39,849 bases of DNA from Octopus bimaculoides (lineage: Eukaryota). The stretch's first letter is position 1. Each line of letters begins with the position of its first letter. The DNA is taken from positions 10,457,103 to 10,496,951 of the forward strand of contig NC_068983.1 in the NCBI RefSeq assembly GCF_001194135.2, given 5' to 3'. Made by a program: the position numbers and the translations under genes. Under the pieces are notes generated by a model. It worked only from the letters and a program-made list of their open reading frames with translations. It had not been told where the DNA came from and did not search any database. Of the stretch, positions 2,081 to 32,776 are shown piece by piece.

Positions 2081-2235
2081 ATATATATGTATACATGTAA
2101 GATATTATTATATTATATAATATAATGATACATATACACACACACACGCACACATACACACACACACACACACACATCAAACTGTTTGTAAAACCTTATT
2201 TGTTAAATTCTTGTATGATATATTTTTCAGGAATA

Positions 2236-2736
2236 ATGTCTACAGATTCACGACTACTGGTCATCTTATGTATTGCTATCATTACCATTGTCTTCAAGGC
2301 AAGTGAAGCCACTGAAACTCATTCAACGGACATAAAAATAGAACCATTTCCTCATCCTCAAGAACAAGGGAAATCTTTAAAATACGAATGCAGCCTCCCA
2401 CACAAAGAAAACATTACATGGCTTTTACCAAATGGTACCAGGGTTGATGAATTTGACGGTAATCATATTGAGCAGATCTCAAACACATTATTCATAAGAA
2501 ATGCTACTGTTCAGGATTCTGGTTCCTACACATGCCTGCAGGCGGAAACTATGATTAAGGCCACTGTTAATGTGATCATTTACATCAAATATGACTATTT
2601 TAAAGAAGGTTTAATCATTGTTGGTATAAACTGTTCTTTATTACTTATAATTTTTACTTGTTATATTGTTAGATTTATCAGGTCTTATAGAAGGAAATAT
2701 CAACAAGCACCCACGGATTTAAATGAAAATATTTGA
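2236..2736 (+). CDS. Single Ig-domain type I transmembrane protein (166 aa), one coding exon
   Basis: Acceptor tttttcag ends at 2230 and ATG is at 2236. Hydrophobic N-terminus (LLVILCIAIITIVF). Ig hallmarks: C52, W62, L85-x-I87, D94-S-G-S-Y-T-C100. N-glycosylation sequons NIT, NGT, NAT. TM segment GLIIVGINCSLLLIIFTCYIV followed by basic RFIRSYRRK and a short tail. AATAAA near 2858. Confidence 0.85.
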   Translation: MSTDSRLLVILCIAIITIVFKASEATETHSTDIKIEPFPHPQEQGKSLKYECSLPHKENITWLLPNGTRVDEFDGNHIEQISNTLFIRNATVQDSGSYTCLQAETMIKATVNVIIYIKYDYFKEGLIIVGINCSLLLIIFTCYIVRFIRSYRRKYQQAPTDLNENI

Positions 2737-5883: not shown

Positions 5884-5921
5884 GTGTTAACACTTTAATC
5901 CGCTTGTCTTTCTTCTCAATG
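5884..5921 (-). CDS. Coiled-coil gene exon 7 (N-IEKKDKRIKVLT+C)
   Basis: Acceptor atttctgttgcag, donor C|GTGAGT, phase 2 to 1. The seven exons total 424 nt in one continuous frame. Remembered similarity to CCDC152 (KMVETN..., ECATL..., LVSE...Y...I, IEKKEMEI) is tentative. Confidence 0.75.
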
Positions 5922-7602
5922 CTGCAACAGAAATCACAATTATTTTTATTATGAACAATAGAACATACAGAACAACAATATATTTTTAATCCATAACATC
6001 AAACGTTTATTTTATTGAATATCCTGTCAATATTGTGCATTTTGAATCCCAATTCTTTACAGTTTTACACCAGATGTCCATTGTAAAAGAGTTCTGAGCC
6101 ACCAAGGAAGCATATACAGGGTAACTTGATACACTAGAAACTGCAACCAAATCTCCCTCAAATCACATCCTATCATCACCATCATCATTTAATGTCAATT
6201 TTTTTACATGCTTGTAAGAGTCAGATGGGGATTTGTTGAAGATTTTTTCTATAACCAACCCTCACCTGTTTCCCAGCAAGGTAATATTCCACTTTCTGCA
6301 AAAACATCTCTGGCCATGGAGAAATGTTACCTTGCTTGGAAGCAGGTGAGGGTTGGCGATAGAAAGGGCATTCGACCATAGAAAACTTGCCTCAATAAAC
6401 TCTGTCTGATAGATGCAAGTATGTAAAATGGATGTTAAAATGATGAAGAGGAATTTAAATTCTAGAACTTATCTCCCCTGCCTTTCATAAGTTAATACAG
6501 TTAGCCATTAAGAAAATGATTAGTTCATTTCACTATTAGGACAATTCTAATTAAAATTTATTGGCACTGCAGCATGAAGTATGGTATCACCTACTTATTA
6601 ACCTTTAGCACACTGCAGGTGCATAATGTCACCATGTGAGTTTTCTCCCCTGTTGTAACAGGGGAAACAATTGTAGAGATAATGCAGTGTTAAAGGTTAA
6701 AAAGACATGACTGAAATACAATATTTTCAGTCTGAATATGTTAGTAAATATGTTAATAAAACATGGTGAGAAGGTAGAAAAAATTCAGTGATGAGTAAAA
6801 TGTATGACAAGTATTCGAAGTGCAGATATGGCTGTGTGGTTAAGAAGTTTGCTTCAGAACGACATGGTTAGGGGTTCAATTCCACTACATGAACATTCTT
6901 GGCTAACATTCTACATTGTAGCTATAGTTCGATCAATACCTTGAGAGTAAAACTGATAAACACAAACTGACAATGTGTGTGTGTGTGTGTGCGTGTTTGT
7001 GTGTGTGCGTGCTTACATATGTTTGTGTAATTTTGTATTTCTCCTTGTTTCACTGACTGTAAACAAACAACAGCATCACTATGAACACAAGCAGTGTTGT
7101 TTGTTTATAGTCACACACAAAAGCACATCAGGATTTCTCAACATGTTATGTCACCTTTGCAAACAAAAAGTCCATAGCTGTCCTCAGTAGTATAGTGGTA
7201 AGTAACTCTGCTTGTCAAACAGGAGACTGGGGTTCGATTCCCCATGAAAGAGGTCCATTTTTTTGGCACTTGTGGTGCTCCAGCATGGCCACAGCCTTAG
7301 GGCTGAACTGTATAAAAGAATAAAAGAATTCCTTGCTTTGAAACATGTGATGGCTAGCAACAGAAAGGGAATCTGGCCATAGAAAAAACAAACTCAAAAT
7401 ATTCCTTCTCATCCAGTAAGCATGGGAAAGTGGACATTAAAAAGACAATGGTGATGATGATGATGAGTTAACCGATGATCAAAATATAAATTCTAACCAT
7501 GGCCACCCAGTTGTTTTTCCATTTTTTTTTTTCAGGTTTAGTGTATCAAAGAACACATTATCCAATGGTCTTTTTTTTTCCTAAGATGATGTGATGATCA
7601 TC

Positions 7603-8199: not shown

Positions 8200-8309
8200 T
8201 TTAATAAATATTTTTTCTCAGCAAGCTCCTTCTGCGAGACCAACTCCTTTAGTTTGCTCTTTTCAGCAAAATAGGCTTCAGATGATTCACGGAAGATCTT
8301 ATTTTCACT
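8200..8309 (-). CDS. Coiled-coil gene exon 6 (SENKIFRESSEAYFAEKSKLKELVSQKELAEKKYLL+AA)
   Basis: Acceptor catttttctacttcag, donor AA|GTTAGT, heptad-like charged sequence, phase 0 to 2. An extra exon hidden in the gap 9288-9902 cannot be excluded. Confidence 0.8.
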
Positions 8310-9287: not shown

Positions 9288-9902
9288 NNNNNNNNNNNNN
9301 NNNNNNNNNNNNNNNNNNNNNNNNNNNNNNNNNNNNNNNNNNNNNNNNNNNNNNNNNNNNNNNNNNNNNNNNNNNNNNNNNNNNNNNNNNNNNNNNNNNN
9401 NNNNNNNNNNNNNNNNNNNNNNNNNNNNNNNNNNNNNNNNNNNNNNNNNNNNNNNNNNNNNNNNNNNNNNNNNNNNNNNNNNNNNNNNNNNNNNNNNNNN
9501 NNNNNNNNNNNNNNNNNNNNNNNNNNNNNNNNNNNNNNNNNNNNNNNNNNNNNNNNNNNNNNNNNNNNNNNNNNNNNNNNNNNNNNNNNNNNNNNNNNNN
9601 NNNNNNNNNNNNNNNNNNNNNNNNNNNNNNNNNNNNNNNNNNNNNNNNNNNNNNNNNNNNNNNNNNNNNNNNNNNNNNNNNNNNNNNNNNNNNNNNNNNN
9701 NNNNNNNNNNNNNNNNNNNNNNNNNNNNNNNNNNNNNNNNNNNNNNNNNNNNNNNNNNNNNNNNNNNNNNNNNNNNNNNNNNNNNNNNNNNNNNNNNNNN
9801 NNNNNNNNNNNNNNNNNNNNNNNNNNNNNNNNNNNNNNNNNNNNNNNNNNNNNNNNNNNNNNNNNNNNNNNNNNNNNNNNNNNNNNNNNNNNNNNNNNNN
9901 NN

Positions 9903-10707: not shown

Positions 10708-10771
10708 CTTCTTATTGAGTTCAGGTACCTTGAGAAGATTATTGACTTGTGAACGCAGTTCTTGAGAAGTC
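10708..10771 (-). CDS. Coiled-coil gene exon 5 (R-TSQELRSQVNNLLKVPELNKK)
   Basis: Acceptor ttttctctttgtcag, donor AAG|GTAAAG, phase 2 to 0. Confidence 0.8.
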
Positions 10772-10845: not shown

Positions 10846-11668
10846 CATAAGGCAGACTGTATGACGCATGTGTGCGAACAGCCATGCTACATGGCAGTGA
10901 AACATGGGCTGTGACTGCTGAGGACATGCGTAAGCTCGCAAGGAATGAAGCCAGTATGCTCCGCTGGATGTGTAATGTAAATGTGCATACCCGTCAGAGT
11001 GTAAGTATCTTGAGAGAAAAGCTGAACATAAGAAGCGTCAGTAGTGGTGTGCAAGAGAGACGATTGCGCTGGTTTGGACATGTGGTGAGAATGAATGAGG
11101 ATAGCTGCGTGAAAAAGTGCCACTCCCTAACAGTTGAGGGAACCCGTGGAAGAGGNNNNNNNNNNNNNNNNNNNNNNNNNNNNNNNNNNNNNNNNNNNNN
11201 NNNNNNNNNNNNNNNNNNNNNNNNNNNNNNNNNNNNNNNNNNNNNNNNNNNNNNNNNNNNNNNNNNNNNNNNNNNNNNNNNNNNNNNNNNNNNNNNNNNN
11301 NNNNNNNNNNNNNNNNNNNNNNNNNNNNNNCACCGAGGCGATGACTACTGACCGAGACCTTTGGAAATGTGCTGTGCGTGAGAAGACCCGGCAAGCCAAG
11401 TGAGATCGTTGCCAGTGCCCCTGGACTGGCTCTTGTGCGGGTGGCACATAAAAGACACCATTTCGAGCGTGGCCGTTTTCGTGTGGGTGACACGTAAAAG
11501 CACCCACTACACTCTCTGAGTGGTTGGTGTTAGGAAGGGCATCCAGCTGTAGAAACTCTGCCAAATTAGATTGGAGCCTGGTGTAGCCATCCGGTTGCAC
11601 CAGTCCTCAGTCAAATCGTCCAACCCATGCTAGCATGGAAAGCGGACGTTAAACGATGATGATGATGA
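10846..11668 (+). mobile_element. 5'-truncated RTE LINE 3' end (ORF2 C-terminus, 3' UTR, (GAT)n tail), interrupted by an N gap
   Basis: MLHGSETW...RRLRWFGHVVRM...RGR...DRDLWK..VREKTRQAK*, then a 3' UTR ending in cggacgttaaacgatgatgatgatga. Confidence 0.9.
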
Positions 11669-12769: not shown

Positions 12770-12830
12770 CTTTCTTTTTGCTTTAAACACTCGGCTAAAT
12801 TCTGCAACTTTTTCTTAAGAAATGCTGACT
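12770..12830 (-). CDS. Coiled-coil gene exon 4 (E-SAFLKKKLQNLAECLKQKE+AG)
   Basis: Follows the U12 AC acceptor. Donor AG|GTTTGT, phase 1 to 2. Confidence 0.8.
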
Positions 12831-13234
12831 GTGAAAACTGTTAAGGATTATCTTAATTGGTAAAGACATTTTTAAAACCAAACCAAGTTTTAGCTCAGGA
12901 CGAACACAATAACATGGTAAAAATAGAACCACAAACATAGTGGGGCTATAAGGGCGGTCCACCTTGGGCAGCACTTTTCATTCTGTTGTAGGTAATATAT
13001 GGTCTTTGTGGGGTCTGGGGGTGGCACACACTCTAGCTACGCTAGTGAACAGAACACAACAGTTTGTGTAACACCAAAAACAACAATACCATATAATTAT
13101 ATTTCTAAAAATCACAAAATATAATATGTTAGAATTCTTATTCCATTTATTACCTTTACACAATCCTACATTTTCTAAACATTGCTCTGTGTGTGTTGTG
13201 TGTGTGTGTGCATGCGTGTGTAGGAAAACAGACA

Positions 13235-13468
13235 GGCGGCGATCTGGCAGAAACGTTAGCACGCCAGGCGAAATGCTTAGCGGTATTTCGGCAGCCGTTA
13301 TGTTCTGGGTCCAAATTCCGCTGAGGTCGACTTTGCGTTCCATCCTTTCGGGGTCGATAAATTAAGTACCAGTTACGCACTAGGGTTGATGTAATCGACT
13401 TAATCCCTTTGTCTGTCCTTGTTTGTCCCCTCTATGTTTAGCCCCTTGTGGGCAATAAAGAAATAAGA
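13235..13468 (+). mobile_element. Family B SINE, inside the U12 intron
   Basis: Near-identical to 34057-34279. Diverged copies lie near 20750-21110, 25230-25340, 26640-26760, 31690-31800(-), 35640-35780, 38280-38720 and 39125-39345. Confidence 0.9.
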
Positions 13469-13606
13469 CAGGTAGATAGATACACCTGAAACTGAAAAAT
13501 AATACAAAAGCAAAAAGCTTTCAAAGTCAATTTGGTACTCAGGTTCCATGCATAATATTTCACAAAGCTCGAGCACCATAACAATTATGGGGTGGGTAAC
13601 TTTTTC

Positions 13607-13985
13607 AGCTGTGTGGTATGAAGTTTGCTTCCCAACTGCAGGATTCCAGATTCAGACCCACAGCGAGGTACCTAGGGCAAGTGTCTTGTAGTATAGCCTT
13701 AGGCTGACCAAAGCCTTGTGAGTGGATTTGGTAGAAGGATACTGAAAGAAGCCCGTCATGTATGTGTGTGCCTGTGTTTGTGCCCCACCACAACTTGACA
13801 AGCAGTATTGGTTTGTTTACATTCTCATAATTTAGCAGTTTGGCAAAATAGACCAATACAATAAGTACCAGACATAAAAAAAATAATAAATACTGGGGTT
13901 GATTCATTTGATTGAAATTCCTCAAGGTGGTGCTCCAGCGTGGTCACAGTCTAATGACTGAAACAAGTAAGAGATACAAGATAAA
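13607..13985 (+). mobile_element. Family A SINE (diverged), inside the U12 intron
   Basis: Colinear with 18703-19068. Confidence 0.85.
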
Positions 13986-14186
13986 AGATATATAGACACA
14001 CACACATTCACTCTGCATAACATGTTGAGTACTTTTTTCTCCAATTTGTAAATCTAAATGCACCTACTTTATATATGTTCATGTATGTACATGCATGCAC
14101 ATAACCACAAACAGACATGAATAATTCATACAGCAAATTAAAAAGCAAACAATGTGATATTATCTCAAAAAGCAGATAAAGGATAT

Positions 14187-14221
14187 CATTTGTCTTGGTC
14201 TGAAGTAGCTTCATGATTTTA
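14187..14221 (-). CDS. Coiled-coil gene exon 3 (D-KIMKLLQTKTN+G), ending at a U12 donor
   Basis: Acceptor ctctctttttttcag. The phase-2 entry completes GAT (D). The exon ends at G|ATATCCTTT, the U12 AT-AC donor consensus. Confidence 0.8.
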
Positions 14222-15785: not shown

Positions 15786-15844
15786 TCGGATGATATGATT
15801 TTGTCTTTCAAAGATTGCAACAGTGAATTCTTTTCAATAAATTT
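15786..15844 (-). CDS. Coiled-coil gene exon 2 (KFIEKNSLLQSLKDKIISS+GA)
   Basis: Acceptor tttctcttttcag, donor GA|GTAAGT, open frame, phase 0 to 2. Confidence 0.8.
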
Positions 15845-16184: not shown

Positions 16185-17481
16185 CTAATGGGAGCTTTTG
16201 ATGAAAGAGAGAAAGAGTTGGGGATAACTGGAAGTTCCTGCAGGACAATCTACTGAGGGCTATGGATGAAATCTGTGGTTGGTGCAGAGTCCCGGCTAGA
16301 CCAAGGGTGACATGGTGGTGGAGCAAGGTTGACAGTGTTATAAAAGCAAAAAGACAAGCCAGGAGAGACTGGAAAAACAGTGGAAGCAGAGAATTATATC
16401 AGGTAGCCAAAAGAGTAGTTAGGCGTCAGGTATACATAGCAAAAGGAATAGCTGAAGGTAAGAGGTTCGCAAATGTCCTACAATGTGAGGATCAGAGGTG
16501 TGAGGTGAACAGGATTGCAAAGTATGGTATCAGAGGAAATAGTGATGTGGTAGGTGAGAAATGTGTGTGAATGGATAACGGTATGCTTGCACTTAACAAC
16601 TCAGAGAAGAAAGATGCATGGAAGTGTCACCATGAACGGTTACTAAACATAGAAAATGAATGGGAGAAGGAGAGTTTACCAAACATCAAACAAATTGAGG
16701 GACCAGCCATCAGAGTTGATAGCAGCATAATAGATAAGGCAATTAAAGACAAGAAGACAGGGATAGCCCCTGGGCCATCAGGAATCACTGCCGAGATGAT
16801 TAAAATTTCTGGTGGTGTAGGATACAGCTTAGTCACCTGTATAGTTAATTACGTTATTCAGGAAGGCACCATCCTCAATAACTGGTGTAGTAGCATTATA
16901 GTTGGCTGCTACAAGGGTAAAGGTGATGCCTTAGACAGAAACAACTACAGAGGTATTGAACTGCTAGACCAAGTCATGAAAATTACTGAGAGGATTATAG
17001 CTCAACTGATTAAAAATGGAATTAAACTAGATGAACTACAGTTTGGTTTTGTACCTGGGAAGAGTACCACAGATGCCATCTTTCTAGTGAGACAGCTGCA
17101 GGAAAAGTACTTGACCAAAAGTAAGCCATTGTACCAGGAGAAAGCTTTCGACAGAGTTCCCCGCTCTGTTATATGGTGGTCTCTAAGGAGGTTAGGAGTG
17201 GCTTGTTAGAGCTGTACAGTGGTGCAGTCAGTAAGGTGAGAGCTGGCCATGAATATGGTGATGAATTCAATGTTCAGGGGTTCGCCAGGGCTCAGTTCTC
17301 ATCCCACTCTTATTCAGTATAGTCCTCCAGGGCATAACAGAGGAATTCAAGACTGGGTGCCTGTGGGAACTGCTATATGCTGATGACCTTGCCCTTTTTG
17401 CAGAATCTTTAGCAGAATTGGAGAAGAAATTCCAGGAATGGAAACAAAACCTGGAATCAAAGGGCCTTAAAGTTAACCTAC
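16185..17481 (+). mobile_element. Degenerate RTE-clade LINE, ORF2 reverse transcriptase fragment
   Basis: APGPSGI, NYRGIELL, QFGFVPGKSTTDAIF, EKAFDRVP, QGSVL and YADD (17376-17387). In-frame stops and deletions are present. Confidence 0.92.
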
Positions 17482-20040: not shown

Positions 20041-21482
20041 CTTTAGAGGAACATACAACTGCATTTTCTAATGCGTCCCTTCATTATTTAAGACGGTAGG
20101 GAGTGATCTGATGGGGGTTTGGCTGCTGTTTCAAAAGGTCGAGCGACTACATAATAAGAAGCCTTCGTCGCAAAAACGAAAGCGAACGTTTCATGCTTAC
20201 TTTTATCGATTCATTCATTTTAATACAATAGATGATAGCGTATTGTAAGAATGAAAACGAAGGCAAAAAATGGGTGATGGGGGTAAAAATTTTCATAACT
20301 TAATTGTTATTAAAAGAAAACAAGACATTTTCAGTGGGGAAAAAGAGGTTCACAAACAATTGAGAAAGTTTAGCAACTTTATAACTAAATAGAGAAAGAG
20401 ATAACGATGGGACCTAAACGCTCAACCTGCTAAAAATACCAGCTAAAATTTAACTCAAATCATACTCTGTGATCTTAAAAAGGAAAACGAAGGATATTTT
20501 GAACAATGTAGGTTCTGATATTCAAAAATGCGAGATGGTCATGTCTTGAATATCTTCATGCAAGGATCTGCTCAATCAAGATTGACTGGGGGCATAACAA
20601 CTATCAAAGGAGAAAGGGACTCTAAAGCGGTAAATTTAAACATGACGTAAGAAAAATAACATTTCATAAATATATTCCCGAGACTGTATATTTATGAAGT
20701 GGAATATATATTGGGGCTTATATACATTCGAGTCCCTGACGGAGTAAAATCTTCGTTTGTTCTGGCTCTTTTAGTTCTGCGTTCAAATCCTACATTCTGA
20801 GTTCAAATCCCGAGTCAATAAAAGTACTAGTTAAGTAGTTTTTATGCTCGACTGTTCTCCTAAACTTTTTGCCATTACACACAATTTTAGAAAATGAAAT
20901 TTATTTTTAAATACAGTAGGGACTAGTGAGAAAATTCACTACTAGGACTCGGGAAAAATTACTTGGCAGTATTTTTTCGGTTCTTTACGTTCCGATGTCA
21001 ACTTTGTTTTCCGGGGTCGATAAAGTACCACTCAAGTAACGAGGTTGAAATAATGCAGTCTAATCCCCTACCCTTAAAAATTACTAGCCTTCTGCTGAAA
21101 TTTGAAATAATTATTATATTTTCTTATATATATATATGTGAATGCTATACCGTAGAATTACTGTTTACACACACACCTCAAACAGGCACATAGCTTTACA
21201 CGCGCACATACAGACATATAACATTAACCGAAAGAATGCCACATATATATATATATATATATANNNNNNNNNNNNNNNNNNNNNNNNNCACATATATATA
21301 CACACAAACACACATATATAGTATATATATATATATATACACACACACAAACACGTGTGTACAGATTTACATCAATAACTGTACATATATGTGTGTGTGT
21401 GTGTGTGTGTGTTTACGTTACAGCTGAATAAAACGTGTGTATGCGAGTATCTGGAATACACAAGACAAGTTTATGTACTTAC

Positions 21483-21539
21483 CTGGGAGTCATTCTGATA
21501 GTTAGAGTCAAACCAAGAGCTCAGGTCGTCCATGTCCAT
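21483..21539 (-). CDS. Coiled-coil gene, putative first coding exon (MDMDDLSSWFDSNYQNDSQ)
   Basis: ATG at 21539 with an in-frame upstream stop. Strong donor CAG|GTAAGT at 21482. Phase 0 matches the next exon. Confidence 0.65.
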
Positions 21540-23420: not shown

Positions 23421-24309
23421 CTCTTTTACTTGTTTCACTCATTTGACTGTGGCCATGCTGGAGCACCGCCTTTAGTCGAGCTAATCGACCTCAGGACTTA
23501 TTCTTTGTAAGCCTAGTACTTATTTTATCGGTCTCTTTTGCCGAACCGTTAAGTTACGGGGACGTAAACACACCAGCATCAGTTGTCAAGCGATGTTGGG
23601 GGACAAACACAGACACACAAACACACACACAAACACACATATGATGGGCTTCTTNNNNNNNNNNNNNNNNNNNNNNNNNNNNNNNNNNNNNNNNNNNNNN
23701 NNNNNNNNNNNNNNNNNNNNNNNNNNNNNNNNNNNNNNNNNNNNNNNNNNNNNNNNNNNNNNNNNNNNNNNNNNNNNNNNNNNNNNNNNNNNNNNNNNNN
23801 NNNNNNNNNNNNNNNNNNNNNNNNNNNNNNNNNNNNNNNNNNNNNNNNNNNNNNNNNNNNNNNNNNNNNNNNNNNNNNNNNNNNNNNNNNNNNNNNNNNN
23901 NNNNNNNNNNNNNNNNNNNNNNNNNNNNNNNNNNNNNNNNNNNNNNNNNNNNNNNNNNNNNNNNNNNNNNNNNNNNNNNNNNNNNNNNNNNNNNNNNNNN
24001 NNNNNNNNNNNNNNNNNNNNNNNNNNNNNNNNNNNNNNNNNNNNNNNNNNNNNNNNNNNNNNNNNNNNNNNNNNNNNNNNNNNNNNNNNNNNNNNNNNNN
24101 NNNNNNNNNNNNNNNNNNNNNNNNNNNNNNNNNNNNNNNNNNNNNNNNNNNNNNNNNNNNNNNNNNNNNNNNNNNNNNNNNNNNNNNNNNNNNNNNNNNN
24201 NNNNNNNNNNNNNNNNNNNNNNNNNNNNNNNNNNNNNNNNNNNNNNNNNNNNNNNNNNNNNNNNNNNNNNNNNNNNNNNNNNNNNNNNNNNNNNNNNNNN
24301 NNNNNNNNN

Positions 24310-24745
24310 AATTTGACATCGCTGCCCTAAACTGTGTCTCATTTCGAGCCATCGGTTCGTCTGGTATCGTGGATAGAATAGTGTCGAGTTTTGTTTTGAA
24401 GACCTCTACATCCATGTCTTGCAGGTCTCTCAATTGTTTTGGCAGGGCATTAAAGAGCTGAGGTCCTCTGAAATCGAGGCTGTTGCAATACCTCGTTCTT
24501 ATGTGAAATGCAGTGGACCTTGGTACTATGCAGTGGCAACCTGTGCGGGCATTCTAGATGCCAAAGTTTGGTACCAATCCTTCCAGTATTTTCCATTTGT
24601 ATATTATTACATATCTCTACCGCCTGCGTTCCAGGGAGTAGAGACTTAGTGCCTTCAGTCGCTCCATGTAGTTCATCTACTGGACTGTGGCGATCTATTT
24701 TGTATAGTGACGCTGAATTGCCGCGAGTTTTGCTGTCATGATATC
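24310..24745 (-). mobile_element. CR1-like non-LTR retrotransposon ORF2 C-terminal fragment (pseudogenised)
   Basis: Minus-strand translation YMERLKALSLYSLERRR*RYVIIYKWKILEGLVPN...FNALP...FKTKLDTILSTIPDEP...SN, with in-frame stops. Confidence 0.8.
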
Positions 24746-27485
24746 ATGCGGAGGAAGTAAATTTTTCATTCGGATAAATGTATGTATGTATGTATGGGTA
24801 AGATGTGTTGTCTCAATAAAAGCTCCCACCGCCCACGGCAAATCATCCATTCGCCTCTGTCTTGTCTAATTCTATCTCTTTATTATAGATCTCTATCTTT
24901 TTCTTAACTCGAAAACTGGGTTTTATGCTAAATCTATTTCTTTTGGAGACTGTACTCTGGGGGAAATCTCAATCTTCCGACTTTCAACTGGGGTGACATG
25001 ATTCGGAACAACCACGAAGAACAGAAATTAAGAGAATTTTTGCCATTGTTAACCTATCAATAAATTAACATGCATCTAATCCACACACACATTAGATCTA
25101 ATCCACACACACACGCACACGAAAAAAGCAAAACCATTTCGTACTTCAAAAAATTTAACTGATGATAATTCTCTGATCATTTTGTGTGTGTGCGCGTGTT
25201 GAGAGCATTAAAAATAATTCTATTTCTATTCCTAAGTCGTTGGTGCCGGACAAAATGCTCAGCGGCATTTCGTCCGTCTTTATGTTCTGAGTTCAAATGC
25301 CGCCGAGGTTTACTTTGCTTTTCATCTTTTAGGGGGTTTTAGCGAGGTAGAAAAGATGCATGTGGCTAAGGCTCTGGTATTATTATAATCTTCTGGTTTA
25401 ATAAGAGTCATGATGAAGAACATCAAGAAATACGAAGACAAGTTAAAGTTGACTGCCGGTTATTTCGCCGCTAAAAGAAAATACAGCAACTGGTGTACAT
25501 GGATATTTCTGTTAATTAAAATACATAGGTTCCTTGTGCTTCTTGAAGATGGAGATTTACACAGGAAAAACACAAAAAAAAAAAAACAGAGACAAAAATA
25601 TCTCCACTGAAATCTCAAAAGCAATCCTTTATTTTTATAGCCATCGGGTAGCTTCAGACAGGCTATATTTTTGGCTGTGGTGAGGAAAGGTTTGATTAAA
25701 CGGTACGCACAGGTATGGTCATGTGACCACTTGCAGAAAAACCCTTGTAAGAGCCAAATTAGGACTATTTAACGCGAAACCGCCGAAATACAGACTGTTC
25801 TGTTGATACTACAGGGTCAATAAAATAATTACCAGTTGAACACTGAGGTTGATGTAATTGATTAGCTCCCAATCTAACAATTTCAGGCTTTGTGCTTATT
25901 GTAGAAATNNNNNNNNNNNNNNNNNNNNNNNNNNNNNNNNNNNNNNNNNNNNNNNNNNNNNNNNNNNNNNNNNNNNNNNNNNNNNNNNNNNNNNNNNNNN
26001 NNNNNNNNNNNNNNNNNNNNNNNNNNNNNNNNNNNNNNNNNNNNNNNNNNNNNNNNNNNNNNNNNNNNNNNNNNNNNNNNNNNNNNNNNNNNNNNNNNNN
26101 NNNNNNNNNNNNNNNNNNNNNNNNNNNNNNNNNNNNNNNNNNNNNNNNNNNNNNNNNNNNNNNNNNNNNNNNNNNNNNNNNNNNNNNNNNNNNNNNNNNN
26201 NNNNNNNNNNNNNNNNNNNNTTTTTTCTTTCTTTGTCTTTCTTTTGTAATATATATGTATTATATACATCTTATATATGTAATAAAATTTGTTTTGTCTC
26301 CAGAAATCATTTCCCAATTTGTACCAGATACTGAAAAACTGCACAAAGGACAACGGAAATTCCATTCAAAATATATTTTTCTAAGAGGAAAAAAAGAAAA
26401 ATTTATGAACAACCACATCCCCATATGTGTTCTCTCTCCACGCTTCGTAATTGGGATTATTTATTTATTTCATATGTAGTGGAGTCACCAAAATGTGGTA
26501 TGTTTTTGTTTAGTGTCGGTGCGATAGGCATGTATTTGCCTGTGAAATGACAAAATGATAACTGGTTCAACTATAACATTTTTTGTTAATTTTTACACAT
26601 ATATATTTCCTTTATTTTAATTCATCTGCAGTTTGGCAGAATTATAATTCTTTACGTTCTGAGTTCAAATCCTGTCATAGTTAATTTTGAGTTTCATACC
26701 TTCTGAGGTGTCGATAAATCAAAGTTTACTCTCAAATGCCTGGATTTCTTCCTATTTTTGAAACAGTTATTACTTCTGTCGTCACTATTCTTTTATAATT
26801 CCCTTGGTGGACAAGACAAAAACTTACTGCTTTTCTTTTCCTTTCTTGTTTCCGTTTTAAAATAAATAAATTTCCAGTATTCTACAATAAACAGTGCAGG
26901 AGGGTGGGACGTTTGTACCTTTTACAAGGTCGTAAGTAACACAAGTGAAGTGAAACAGCCTCAACCTAGAATCGAACCTATTTCACCGGCTTAGCAAGCA
27001 GGAATTTATTTATCGTTCTGAAATGCTTATCATGCTTGTAAATATTAAAAATAAATAAAAATCTGTCATATAACTTCAGGTGATTAGTCCAGTTTTGCTT
27101 TATTTCAGTAAAATAATATATATTTGGAAACGGTTGGCGTGAGAGGAGTATAATTTACGAAGACATTTGGAATCGTAACTTGTAACTTCTAACGTTGTCC
27201 AATTATTTAATGTACAATTAAATTGACGTAGTTGAACAAGTGTTCAGCTGTTTTCACTTTCAAATTCGTAGATATACGATGATTTATATGTAACTTGTTT
27301 TTAAAATAAATTTATATATAACATGAACAACTTTATTTAATTATGTGAATTTCAAAATATGATTTTTTAAATAATAAAAAATATAAATTTATTCAATTTT
27401 CGTCTCATGCTTTTCTCAACGATATTACACGAGCGAAACACATTTCAAGTTTTAGAAGCAACTCATTCCTGACTTTCTTAAAAGA

Positions 27486-27968
27486 ATGTCCGTCCGCACA
27501 ACTTCTACTGTTCCTACCTTAACTACTGTGTTATACAGGTATGTTATCCAGTGTCACAGGAAAGCAAGAAGATTCCCAGCTTTGTTATTATTCACAAATA
27601 ACAACGGAAAGAAATGCTGGTCGTCGTTTGTTAAAAAGTGGAACACATGTGAAGCATTGACATTGCGTGTGTCCCTGGCGACTCCTCCAGCATTAATCGA
27701 AACGGGCTTAATTCAAAAGAAATTACTCAGCAATCAAACACCCATCGATTACAACACACAATGCTGGAAATGTCATAAAACTAGAAGTCCGAACAAAGAT
27801 ATTTTCTTCTGCTTTTGTGGTGCTATTCTTTCGCCTTCCAAGAACCTCACATATTTCAAATTACTAGGACTTGAGGAAGGTTTTGAAATCGATAGTGACA
27901 TCCTGACACGACGATATAAAGATTTGCAAAGAATTCTTCACCCTGACAAGTTCAGTCAAAAATCAGAG
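27486..27968 (+). CDS. HSCB: Fe-S cluster co-chaperone HscB/HSC20, exon 1 (161 aa: presequence, Cys knuckle, J domain)
   Basis: CWKC...FFCFC cysteine motif, YFKLLG start of the J domain, YKDLQRILHPDKF with the HPD motif. Donor GAG|GTATTA, phase 0. Confidence 0.95.
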
Positions 27969-30129
27969 GTATTATTGATCTCCTTTGAGATTTATTCATT
28001 TGTTTGTTTACTTTCGCTGTTGTTACGTAATTCAGAAATGTCCCCATGTGTTTAAACACTTCCGAACAGGATGGAAAAATTACTGACGTTGTTTTATAAA
28101 TAGTATTGTAATTAAATGATCAAATATTATGGACTTTCTCGAGATTGCATTTTTTAATGTTCTATTCTTTTGGTGACCACCCTAAAATAGTAATAAGTTT
28201 ATGGGCAGTTGCGATCGAGCTCCGGTTCAGAATCTTAGACGTAGACAGCTTTTAAATGTTTATTGAGGCATACTTACACAAGTATGCCCCGTCTTTGTTT
28301 TCCTCGTAACATCCAGGAAATGTATAACTTATGAAATTTCCTACAAATATGCTTCAGGTGGTGTAGATGACGATTATATCGAATTTGTTGAGAAAATGCT
28401 TTCCGATGAGTTTCGGAAAATTCACATGAGTCGAATTTGTTTTCTCACAACTCTCAGAAAAAAGGGTGTTTTTTTAATGAAATTTTCTTCAAATATCTTT
28501 CAGATGGTGTAGATTACGATTATACCGGAATTTTATGTGCAAAATAAAATTGGGCGGACCTGGCGCACAGTCAACCCCGACCTTTCCGATTTTTTTCCAC
28601 CAGATTCCTGTGTTTTCGATGATGGAGCAGGGTCGGTTTTGGGGGTGGTGAGTGAGCGCCAGGTCACGTACTGACATCATAATTTTTTTTTAGAAATTTC
28701 AAGTTTCATTTTGTAGATATATGTGATGTGTGTCTGTATGTGTGCGAGTCCACCAATTCTTCTAACATTAAATTCCGATATAATCGTAATCTACACAATC
28801 TGAAATATATTTGTAGAAAATTTCATTTTTCTGAAAGTTCCGAAGAAACAAAAGCCGACACATGTGAATTTTCCAAAACTCCTCTCCCCACCCTGAGAAA
28901 CATTTATTTTCACAACAAATTCCAATATAATTGTAATCTAAACTATCCGAAGCGTTTTTATAGAAAATTTCTCTGGAAGTTATGAAGAAACAAAATCGGT
29001 GGGGCGCACTTGTGTATGTAAGCCTTTATTAATACGTATAAGAGCTGTAGATTTCATTTTGTTTTGTTTCCTTCTATGTGACCTTTTTGCCCATATTATT
29101 TAATAATTAGCTAAATTGGTTTGATGTATTTCTCGCCACGTTGTCTATTACTGTTTATTATGTTACATGTGTTATATATCATTTCAATATCACATGGTCT
29201 CATCATATTGCAACCTCTCCGGAATTACCACCGTGCCTGCCAAAAATCAAATTAATTTTTCTCTTCATCTTCTATCTTTTTTCAATTTTAATTAATTAAG
29301 ATTTCCTTGTAGCTAACCTATTTCGATTTTTTTTTCTTCTTGTTCTGGAGTCGTTGCTCTTTCCTATTTTGAGTTGAATTAAGGTTTCGATGGAGTATAT
29401 CTATGGATTTTAGCCAACATATATGTGTAAATATCTTATCTTTATCTTTTACTTGATTCACTCATGAGACTATAGCTGTGCTTGAGCGCCGCCTTGAAGA
29501 GTTTAAGTAGAGCGAATTGACGCCAGTATTTTTGTTAAAGCTTCGTAGTTATATCGATCACTTATATCGATCACCCCGATAGGTTACGGGGACGTAAACA
29601 CGCACCAATACTGTCGAACGGTGGTGGGAGACAGACAGGAAAACCTTCCGCCCGTCCCTCCCCCCATTTTCTCCCAAATTTGTTTATTTAAAAAATTATT
29701 TTTGCCCAAAATCCCCTTTTCGGATACCGGAACCTCCGGAAAATTGTCAAAAATCGGTATTGTGAAATTCCCTCACCTTTCCACCCCAACTTCTTCTCCA
29801 ACACTAACACTAACCCTAACCCTAACCCTAAAACTGTAACCGTAAGTACAGAAATATTTTGAAATTGTTGTCCGAATCATAATGTCCGTATTTTTCCGCA
29901 TACTTAGAAAAAAAAAATTTTTACGAATGTTTTTGGAAATTTTTTCAAGAATCATAATCTCCGTATTTTTCCGCATATTTTGGGAAAAGAAAATTCTGAA
30001 AAAAGTTTAAAATGAAGGAAATGGGGGTGTGATAATTTTAAAATGTCGACTTTTGTCAATTTTTTTGCAGATTCGTATTCCCCGTAGCCGCAAAGCGGAG
30101 TTTGTGTGGAAAAAAAATTTCTTAAGAGT

Positions 30130-32398: not shown

Positions 32399-32776
32399 AT
32401 GGAAAGAACATTTTCAGCTGAACAGTCTTCCCTGGTCAATCTTGCATACACCACTTTGCTCAAGCCATTATCTCGTGGTCAGTATTTGTTGGACATAAAC
32501 GGGACTTCTCTAGATGAAACCACACAAAGTAATGACTTTGATTTCTTATCCAATATCATGAAAACCAATGAAGATTTGGAGAATGTAACTAATGTTGAAG
32601 AGCTTCAGATTATCGAAGATCTTAATATACGGAATTTGAACCAGTGCTATGAGATTTTATCTGAAGCATTCCGTCAAAAGGACTTAGTTGGTGCCAAAGA
32701 GGTTCTGATGAAGTTGAAATATTTCGTAAACATAGATGATAAAATTAAAGAAATGGAACTGTATGAAAGTTTATGA
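32399..32776 (+). CDS. HSCB: HscB/HSC20 exon 2 (125 aa; end of J domain and C-terminal IscU/LYR-binding domain)
   Basis: Acceptor tctctttcag ends at 32398, phase 0. SSLVNLAYTTLLKPLSRGQYLL and AF...AKE.L.K.KYF.NI..KIK match the HscB family. Total protein 286 aa. Confidence 0.95.
   Translation: MERTFSAEQSSLVNLAYTTLLKPLSRGQYLLDINGTSLDETTQSNDFDFLSNIMKTNEDLENVTNVEELQIIEDLNIRNLNQCYEILSEAFRQKDLVGAKEVLMKLKYFVNIDDKIKEMELYESL

Follow-up and report, generated by a model that had tools for sequence, protein, structure and literature searches.

A probable U12-dependent AT-AC intron in the putative octopus orthologue of ICE1

Exon 3 of a minus-strand coiled-coil gene in Octopus bimaculoides is 35 nucleotides (nt) long and contains no GT anywhere in its length. 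How is such an exon joined to the next coding exon, by which spliceosome, and in which gene? We addressed these questions in a stretch of 39,849 nt from contig NC_068983.1 (hereafter, the window; positions are counted from its first letter), for which the initial annotation had proposed a U12-type AT-AC minor intron at 12831-14186 in an unannotated coiled-coil gene. As judged from the sequence comparisons described below, this segment of the minus strand is, with a probability of about 0.9, a genuine U12-dependent AT-AC intron in phase 1, forming intron 3 in the N-terminal coiled-coil region of a gene that is probably the octopus counterpart of ICE1 (little elongation complex subunit 1).

Splice signals of the candidate intron

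On the minus strand, the 3′ end of exon 3 reads ...ACC AAG ACA AAT G/ATATCCTTTATC (the slash marks a splice boundary), with the first intron base at 14186, and the 3′ side of the intron reads ...GATAATCCTTAACAGTTTTCAC/AG TCA GCA, with the last intron base, the C of the terminal AC, at 12831, giving an intron length of 1,356 nt. The first nine intron bases (ATATCCTTT, 14186-14178) are a perfect match to the U12 5′ splice-site consensus /ATATCCTT. Close to the other end, the second A of the branch-site box TCCTTAAC is located at 12841; this presumed branch adenosine precedes the final base of the intron by 10 nt, a distance that fits the U12 range of roughly 10-15 nt. The AT-AC boundaries, the two boxes, and the spacing of ~10 nt had all been described in the initial annotation, and the minus-strand sequence reads exactly so. 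The other introns of the window start with GT and end with a pyrimidine-rich ...CAG, the candidate alone being different. The pyrimidine fraction at positions -22 to -4 is 0.58 in intron 3 versus 0.79-1.0 in introns 1, 2, and 4, and the same value of 0.58 in intron 7 makes a missing polypyrimidine tract a soft criterion. Approximately 45% of intron 3 is composed of interspersed repeat (13234-13438 and 13608-14007, from comparison of the window with itself).

When 14187 is joined to 12830, the reading frame is preserved and the peptide runs ...LLQTKTN-E-SAFLKKKLQNLAECLKQKE, with AATG-AGTCAGCA as the mRNA junction predicted from 14187^12830. The nearest GT or GC donors downstream of exon 3 either run into a stop codon, shift the frame, or add 12 or more hydrophobic residues, which bears out the earlier claim that this exon lacks a usable in-phase GT donor.

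The frequencies of the motifs in the window were compared with those expected by chance. The 5′ splice-site motif ATATCCTT occurs 4 times (1.9 expected), the branch-site motif TCCTTAAC twice (1.5 expected), and RTATCCTT 7 times (3.4 expected). In a simulation of 1,000 windows having the first-order composition of the real one, in which sets of a 5′ splice site, a branch site, and a terminus were sought within 20 kb, at least one subtype-consistent set was present in 65% of the simulated windows and an AT-AC set in 48%. The idea that the motifs are significant by themselves was rejected on the basis of these counts and the simulation, both showing chance-level frequency. Several decoy motif pairings are also present in the window; for example, GTATCCTT at 13742 was considered as an alternative donor and rejected, being located inside a repeat family within the intron. 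Since the motifs are singly at chance level, the case rests on the boxes located at real coding-exon boundaries. What stands above chance is that both perfect boxes fall on the one position pair linking two real coding exons without loss of frame, and that an orthologue shows the identical layout. From per-position frequencies of about 4e-5 and 2e-5, the probability that both boxes fall by chance at one given frame-restoring position pair would be ~1e-8.

Orthologous coding sequence and the Argonauta intron

To delineate the gene, repeats were masked by self-comparison of the window (repeat or N, ~28% of the window), and open segments bounded by AG...GT were then scored. Seven minus-strand exons (Table 1) chain in one frame into a 141-residue, heptad-like coiled-coil peptide rich in K/E/L/Q and starting with MDMDDLSSWFDSNYQNDSQ. 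Sequence searches of Pfam and PDB with this model gave nothing significant, and a word-indexed protein search with the peptides of exons 2-4 and exon 7 returned zero matches, despite 40 consecutive identical residues in an Octopus sinensis protein; this miss is a sensitivity limit for short, multi-exon, coiled-coil queries and no sign of absence. An exhaustive HMMER search of 1.8 billion sequences with the 36-residue exon at 8309-8202 retrieved two proteins (E = 5e-7 and 1e-6) of 2,141 and 1,972 residues, showing 86-89% identity at residues 120-155. The two are a RefSeq protein of O. sinensis (P0002) and a protein of Argonauta hians (P0001), both of which start with MDMDDL..., and all seven window exons were placed in order on their N-termini by tblastn. 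These seven detectable exons are open, in frame, and about 90-95% identical to O. sinensis, with intact splice sites.

The exon 3-exon 4 junction is read straight through in both proteins, as ...DKIMKLLQTKTNESAFLKKKLQNLAECLKQKERTSQELRSQVNNLLK in O. sinensis and ...QTKTNESKFLSKKL... in A. hians (...QTKTN-E-S... in both). The restored frame TKTN-E-SAFLKKKL, put forward in the initial annotation, is found verbatim in the O. sinensis orthologue and as TKTNESKFLSKKL in that of A. hians. All GT-AG, GC-AG, and AT-AC pairs in the vicinity of exons 3 and 4 that leave the frame open through exon 5 were listed. This gave 54 frame-preserving, stop-free pairs, among which 14187^12830 alone reproduces the orthologue sequence. 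The 38 pairs of the GT/GC-AG type each insert at least 12 hydrophobic residues (DILYLLFEIISH...), unseen in either orthologue. A metagenome scan for exon 3 followed by the 5′ splice-site pattern gave no matches.

The eight N-terminal exons of the gene are all tiny, ranging from 35 to 110 nt, and one of them, exon 6, was sought across the whole window and not found. This exon is 81 nt long in Argonauta (9736-9816 of the genomic sequence L001) and encodes LKA...KISYIE in the orthologues, corresponding to residues 93-119 of the O. sinensis protein (LKADHELALTKKDSIIEDLKLKISYIE). It is most likely hidden in the assembly gap between exons 5 and 7 (Table 1). A search of the window for coding exons past 5884, on the low-coordinate side, found none, consistent with the 15.6-kb intron 8 of Argonauta; the remainder of the ~2,000-residue coding sequence is beyond the low-coordinate end of the window. 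The O. bimaculoides protein model XP_014791215.1 (P0003) starts at ...NFEGNKQ, with all eight N-terminal exons missing. The expectation that predictors restricted to GT-AG introns mis-model this gene fits the truncated model; an assembly gap or a long intron (5.9 kb or more) may alternatively have caused the truncation. Likewise, the description of the gene as unannotated applies to the O. bimaculoides model, whereas the exons are included in those of O. sinensis and A. hians.

The gene model of Argonauta on L001 reproduces the A. hians protein exactly, and its first 196 codons are interrupted by eight introns; position and phase agree for every intron shared with the window. Intron 3 of Argonauta (L001 6433-8184; 1,752 nt) interrupts the identical codon in phase 1, and is bounded by atg/ATATCCTTTA at its start and TCCTTAACCATGATTAC/ag at its end (in longer form, atg/ATATCCTTTAACTG...TTGATCCTTAACCATGATTAC/agt); GT-AG boundaries are seen in all seven remaining introns. 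It has identical ATATCCTTT and TCCTTAAC boxes with the same 10-nt spacing, and the pyrimidine fraction before its 3′ end is 0.63. The initial annotation had suggested looking in other molluscs for a U12 intron at the same codon and phase, and Argonauta has one with the same boxes. The first 20 intron bases are identical at 18 positions between Octopus and Argonauta, the conservation extending past the 9-nt U12 box. At the 3′ end, a 9-nt block (ATCCTTAAC) and the terminal AC are kept, whereas practically no similarity is left in the 10-nt spacer or farther upstream. Exon 3 is 94% identical at the nucleotide level to L001 6398-6432, as compared with 70-81% for the other exons; this conservation of exon 3 and the intron start may be due to the demands of splicing enhancers or of exon definition where an exon is so short. 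The surroundings are also common to the window and Argonauta, with the first exon of HSCB located upstream on the opposite strand and an immunoglobulin (Ig) gene antisense in intron 8. Among the incirrate octopods, Octopus is placed in a family other than the Argonautidae.

Gene identity and alternative explanations

The orthologues start with a coiled coil, continue with a long middle part of low complexity, and have at the C-terminus a putative ICE1_C domain (Pfam PF25817; 24.9 bits, E = 2e-5, in O. sinensis; 22.3 bits, E = 1e-4, in A. hians), which falls outside the window; the O. bimaculoides model bears a precomputed PF25817 match. The gene that had initially been left anonymous is a probable octopus orthologue of ICE1, as suggested by this domain and architecture. 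ICE1 is the scaffold of the little elongation complex (ELL/EAF/ICE2/ZC3H8), which acts at small nuclear RNA (snRNA) genes. A PDB profile search for ICE1 found no ICE1 chain, and a profile search with the cephalopod N- and C-termini and those of a presumed human ICE1 sequence scored 8,000 generic candidates, none of which passed. The automatic product names of the orthologues ("probable serine/threonine-protein kinase DDB_G0282963" for the A. hians and O. sinensis proteins, and "putative uncharacterized protein DDB_G0282133" among the three octopod proteins) are artefacts caused by the Asn/Ser/Thr-rich tandem repeats (NNPETKF... units) that occupy the central part of the protein; a kinase domain was not detected in P0001, P0002, or P0003.

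Ice1 has been named among the minor-intron genes (Olthof et al. 2021, PMC8034651), and Table S2 of MIDB catalogues the gene as carrying a minor intron in mouse as well as in human (Olthof et al. 2019, PMC6717393). The 5′ splice site given by MIDB for mouse and human ICE1 is ATGATATCCTTT (scores, 96.7 and 99.7), the branch sites are TTTTCTTTAACA and TTTTCTTTAATA, and the intron lengths are 2,466 and 2,780 nt, respectively; the human intron is at chr5:5437115-5439894 in ENST00000296564, and that of mouse is at chr13:70621457-70623922 in ENSMUST00000043493 (PMC6717393). About 26% of human minor introns are AT-AC, with a phase preference of 1 > 2 > 0, and molluscs are relatively rich in minor introns, O. 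sinensis being included in the conservation matrix (Larue and Roy 2023, PMC10639083). Most mollusc orthologues of human minor introns are minor introns too (Olthof et al. 2024, PMC11347168). The 12-mer ATG/ATATCCTTT of Octopus and Argonauta is the MIDB ATGATATCCTTT of mouse and human ICE1. The suggestion that this is a poorly documented minor-intron gene holds in part, ICE1 being already catalogued in the two mammals with the same 12-mer.

For comparison at the codon level, we used a presumed human ICE1 sequence as a provisional guide; its C-terminus scores 315 bits over the full ICE1_C model, an indirect sign that the sequence is sound. Its presumed N-terminus aligns with the window model in BLASTP at E = 0.001 (30% identity over 81 residues, ungapped at the site), and this weak alignment pairs octopus LKDKIISSDKIMKLLQTKTN-E-SAF, in which the junction residues are N50/E51, with what is presumably human LKQKIINTDNLLTEYQKKCD-E-LQF. 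The D-E pair in the presumed human sequence (GAT G/Ax) is compatible with the exonic ATG of MIDB. Positional orthology with the vertebrate ICE1 minor intron is likely on these grounds, and the octopus intron would most probably be the same ancient intron that is kept in mouse and human ICE1.

Several points weigh against this interpretation. A U12-like motif pair alone is frequent by chance, the junction draws its support from proteins predicted in other species, namely O. sinensis and A. hians, and one coding exon is absent from the window, so that the intactness of this gene copy is only partly shown. The ICE1_C scores of 24.9 and 22.3 bits are below the Pfam cut-off of 27 bits, the same-codon claim for vertebrates leans on a presumed human N-terminus (E = 0.001), and ATGATATCCTTT is also found in other minor-intron genes, e.g., ZDHHC17, and is not specific to ICE1. 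In addition, the mRNA AATGAGTCA could equally be obtained from TA-CA boundaries shifted by one base, AT-AC being the conventional reading.

The major spliceosome may instead use nearby GT-AG or GC-AG sites, such as the donor AAA/GTAGGT at 14068 with the acceptor TTTTCACAG/ at 12829, the U12-like boxes then being coincidental. A canonical-looking CAG does overlap the AC end (...CAC/AG is readable as CACAG/), 38 stop-free and frame-preserving GT/GC-AG combinations are available, and U12-like motif pairs are frequent by chance; however, all of these combinations insert 12 to about 60 hydrophobic residues and some trim exon 4, and neither orthologue has an insert. With a GT-free exon 3, an acceptor without a polypyrimidine tract, and Argonauta keeping the U12 boxes and not the candidate GT donors, splicing at such sites is very improbable. 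Alternatively, the AT-AC intron may belong to the rare U2-type AT-AC class removed by the major spliceosome, given that AT-AC ends alone do not set the spliceosome type; SCN4A and SCN5A are generally known to hold both kinds. Introns of that class carry a GT-AG-like 5′ consensus after the first base and a polypyrimidine tract, as is also general knowledge, whereas the octopus intron has perfect ATATCCTTT and TCCTTAAC at the canonical distance, lacks a pyrimidine tract, and has its boxes conserved as blocks in Argonauta, making removal by the major spliceosome extremely improbable.

A different question is whether the intron, if a true cephalopod U12 intron, is non-orthologous to the vertebrate one, owing to an independent origin, another position, or a gene that is not ICE1. 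The domain scores under the curated cut-off, the positional match leaning on a presumed human sequence and a weak alignment (E = 0.001), and the 12-mer common to unrelated minor-intron genes all leave room for non-orthology. We nevertheless consider it rather unlikely in view of the identical architecture from the N-terminal coiled coil through the low-complexity middle to the putative C-terminal ICE1_C, the identical subtype (A at +1) and last three exonic bases, and the ungapped alignment with the presumed human sequence, which sets D/N-E on D/N-E and fits xAT G/. Moreover, minor introns are seldom gained, and as a rule they are conserved between molluscs and human (PMC11347168). The missing coding exon, the five runs of N, and the word-indexed search with O. 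bimaculoides peptides that returned no match could also be explained by a decaying or mis-assembled gene fragment, in which the signals are relics no longer spliced. Each of the seven exons, however, is open and in frame, has intact splice sites, and matches O. sinensis at about 90-95% identity; the missing exon coincides with a 615-nt assembly gap, and the synteny with Argonauta is intact, so that decay or mis-assembly is highly improbable. The preferred reading is the U12-type AT-AC intron proposed in the initial annotation, which is supported by the boxes, their spacing, the in-frame junction, and the conservation in Argonauta.

Proposed mechanism, locus context, and comparison with known minor introns

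According to general knowledge of the minor spliceosome, the U11/U12 di-snRNP (small nuclear ribonucleoprotein) would recognise the intron as a unit, with U11 snRNA pairing with ATATCCTTT and U12 snRNA pairing with TCCTTAAC, from which the branch adenosine would be bulged. The short fixed distance to the terminal AC is expected to set the 3′ splice site, a polypyrimidine tract being dispensable, and U4atac/U6atac.U5 would then replace U11 and catalyse both steps of splicing, after which ...AAT G is continuous with AG TCA... and N-E-S is encoded. The sequence requirements for these steps and their selective conservation are seen directly in the two octopod introns, and from them we infer a probable dependence on these snRNPs. 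Retention of intron 3 would add 59 extra junk codons followed by a stop; therefore, the efficiency of minor splicing can limit protein output.

The complex scaffolded by ICE1 drives RNA polymerase II transcription of snRNA genes, including those of the minor-spliceosome snRNAs. It is conceivable, albeit speculative and rather doubtful, that the U12 intron of ICE1 acts as a feedback sensor, such that low minor-spliceosome activity would lower ICE1 output, or that its regulated retention would tune snRNA supply. The constrained exon 3 (94% versus 70-81%) and the conservation of the first ~20 intron bases fit this idea; both could be cis-elements, either for regulation of this kind or for cross-talk of the major and minor spliceosomes in exon definition.

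Table 1. Coordinates of the gene parts, splice signals, and neighbouring features in the window
Feature	Position	Strand	Remarks
First coding exon, MDMDDLSSWFDSNYQNDSQ	21483-21539	-	Donor CAG/GTAAGT; 18/19 residues identical to O. sinensis
Exon 2, KFIEKNSLLQSLKDKIISS(D)	15786-15844	-	In-frame chain, orthologue match
Exon 3, 35 nt, (D)KIMKLLQTKTN(E)	14187-14221	-	U2-type acceptor upstream, putative U12 donor downstream
Intron 3 of the ICE1-like gene	12831-14186	-	Probably U12-type, AT-AC subtype, phase 1
U12-type 5′ splice-site box ATATCCTTT, intron +1 to +9	14178-14186	-	Outside repeats
U12-type branch-site box TCCTTAAC	12840-12847	-	Fits TCCTTRAY
Terminal AC of the intron	12831-12832	-	Without preceding polypyrimidine tract
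Exon 4, 61 nt, (E)SAFLKKKLQNLAECLKQKE(R)	12770-12830	-	Donor AAG/GTTTGT
Exon 5, (R)TSQELRSQVNNLLKVPELNKK	10708-10771	-	In-frame chain, orthologue match
Assembly gap (run of N)	9288-9902		615 nt, between exons at 10708 and 8309; probable site of exon 6
Exon 7 (orthologue numbering), SENKIFRESSEAYFAEKSKLKELVSQKELAEKKYLL	8200-8309	-	Retrieved the orthologues
Exon 8, (N)IEKKDKRIKVLT	5884-5921	-	In-frame chain, orthologue match
Four more runs of N	11156-11330, 21264-21288, 23655-24309, 25909-26220
HSCB, first open reading frame	27486-28055	+	Contains ...LHPDKF...
HSCB, second open reading frame	32399-32776	+	HSCB_C, E = 3e-14
Single-exon Ig gene	2125-2736	+	Ig_3, E = 1.4e-7
Non-LTR retrotransposon fragments	16262-17209	+
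	10872-11153	+
	24330-24553	-
tRNA match	7181-7252	+	Rfam, 33.1 bits

The gene for HSCB, an iron-sulfur cluster co-chaperone, is arranged head-to-head with the ICE1-like gene, and the two would share a promoter region between about 21.6 and 27.4 kb. The first 48 residues of its first open reading frame, for which Pfam gave no match, are 92% identical to the start of the neighbouring gene in Argonauta. Nested within intron 8 on the opposite strand, the Ig gene has a transmembrane segment and what appears to be a signal peptide, and it is also present in Argonauta (L001 14084-14557; 58% identity, E = 1.6e-60). Fragments of retrotransposons without long terminal repeats (non-LTR) are scattered in the introns and upstream of the gene; one of the three has an RVT_1 match (E = 1.7e-5), another contains ...RRLRWFGHVVRM..., and the third contains ...FKTKLDTILSTIPDEP.... 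The single transfer RNA (tRNA) match is probably a tRNA-derived short interspersed nuclear element (SINE). SINE-like repeat families recur across the window, and the copy within the U12 intron holds the decoy motif at 13742.

With regard to annotation, the ICE1 label and a gene model including the U12 junction correct two faults, namely automatic names that mislead and an O. bimaculoides model that is truncated; the exon assigned to the assembly gap is a further point for annotation. From the evolutionary viewpoint, the locus adds another instance of molluscs keeping most of the minor introns that they have in common with vertebrates, and provides a two-species octopod case in which the U12 boxes and their spacing persist within an otherwise diverged intron. 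The finding of the U12 intron is correct yet ordinary, in that ICE1 is a known minor-intron gene and the junction is already contained in the O. sinensis and Argonauta models; a new question would be opened only if the idea of an ICE1/snRNA feedback is true.

The closest counterparts of the intron are A. hians intron 3 and the O. sinensis junction, which share the codon, the phase, and the flanking exon structure with the window. The A. hians intron differs in length (1,752 versus 1,356 nt) and internal sequence, the window's intron containing SINE-like repeats. The classical AT-AC U12 introns are found in P120/NOP2 (intron F), SCN4A, CDK5, and MATN1. They are alike in the /ATATCCTT 5′ splice site, in TCCTTAAC located 10-15 nt from the 3′ end, in the absence of a polypyrimidine tract, and in being the lone minor intron amid numerous major ones, so that the host gene is the sole difference from the octopus intron and the mechanism is presumably the same. 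The mouse and human ICE1 introns resemble it in the AT subtype (A at +1), the 12-mer at the 5′ splice site, the location in the 5′ coiled-coil part of the gene, and probably the gene family itself, and their lengths of 2.5-2.8 kb are similar to the 1.4-1.8 kb of the octopod introns. The branch box differs between the two groups, having the full consensus TCCTTAAC in octopods and a weaker form in mammals (TTCTTTAACA and TTCTTTAATA).

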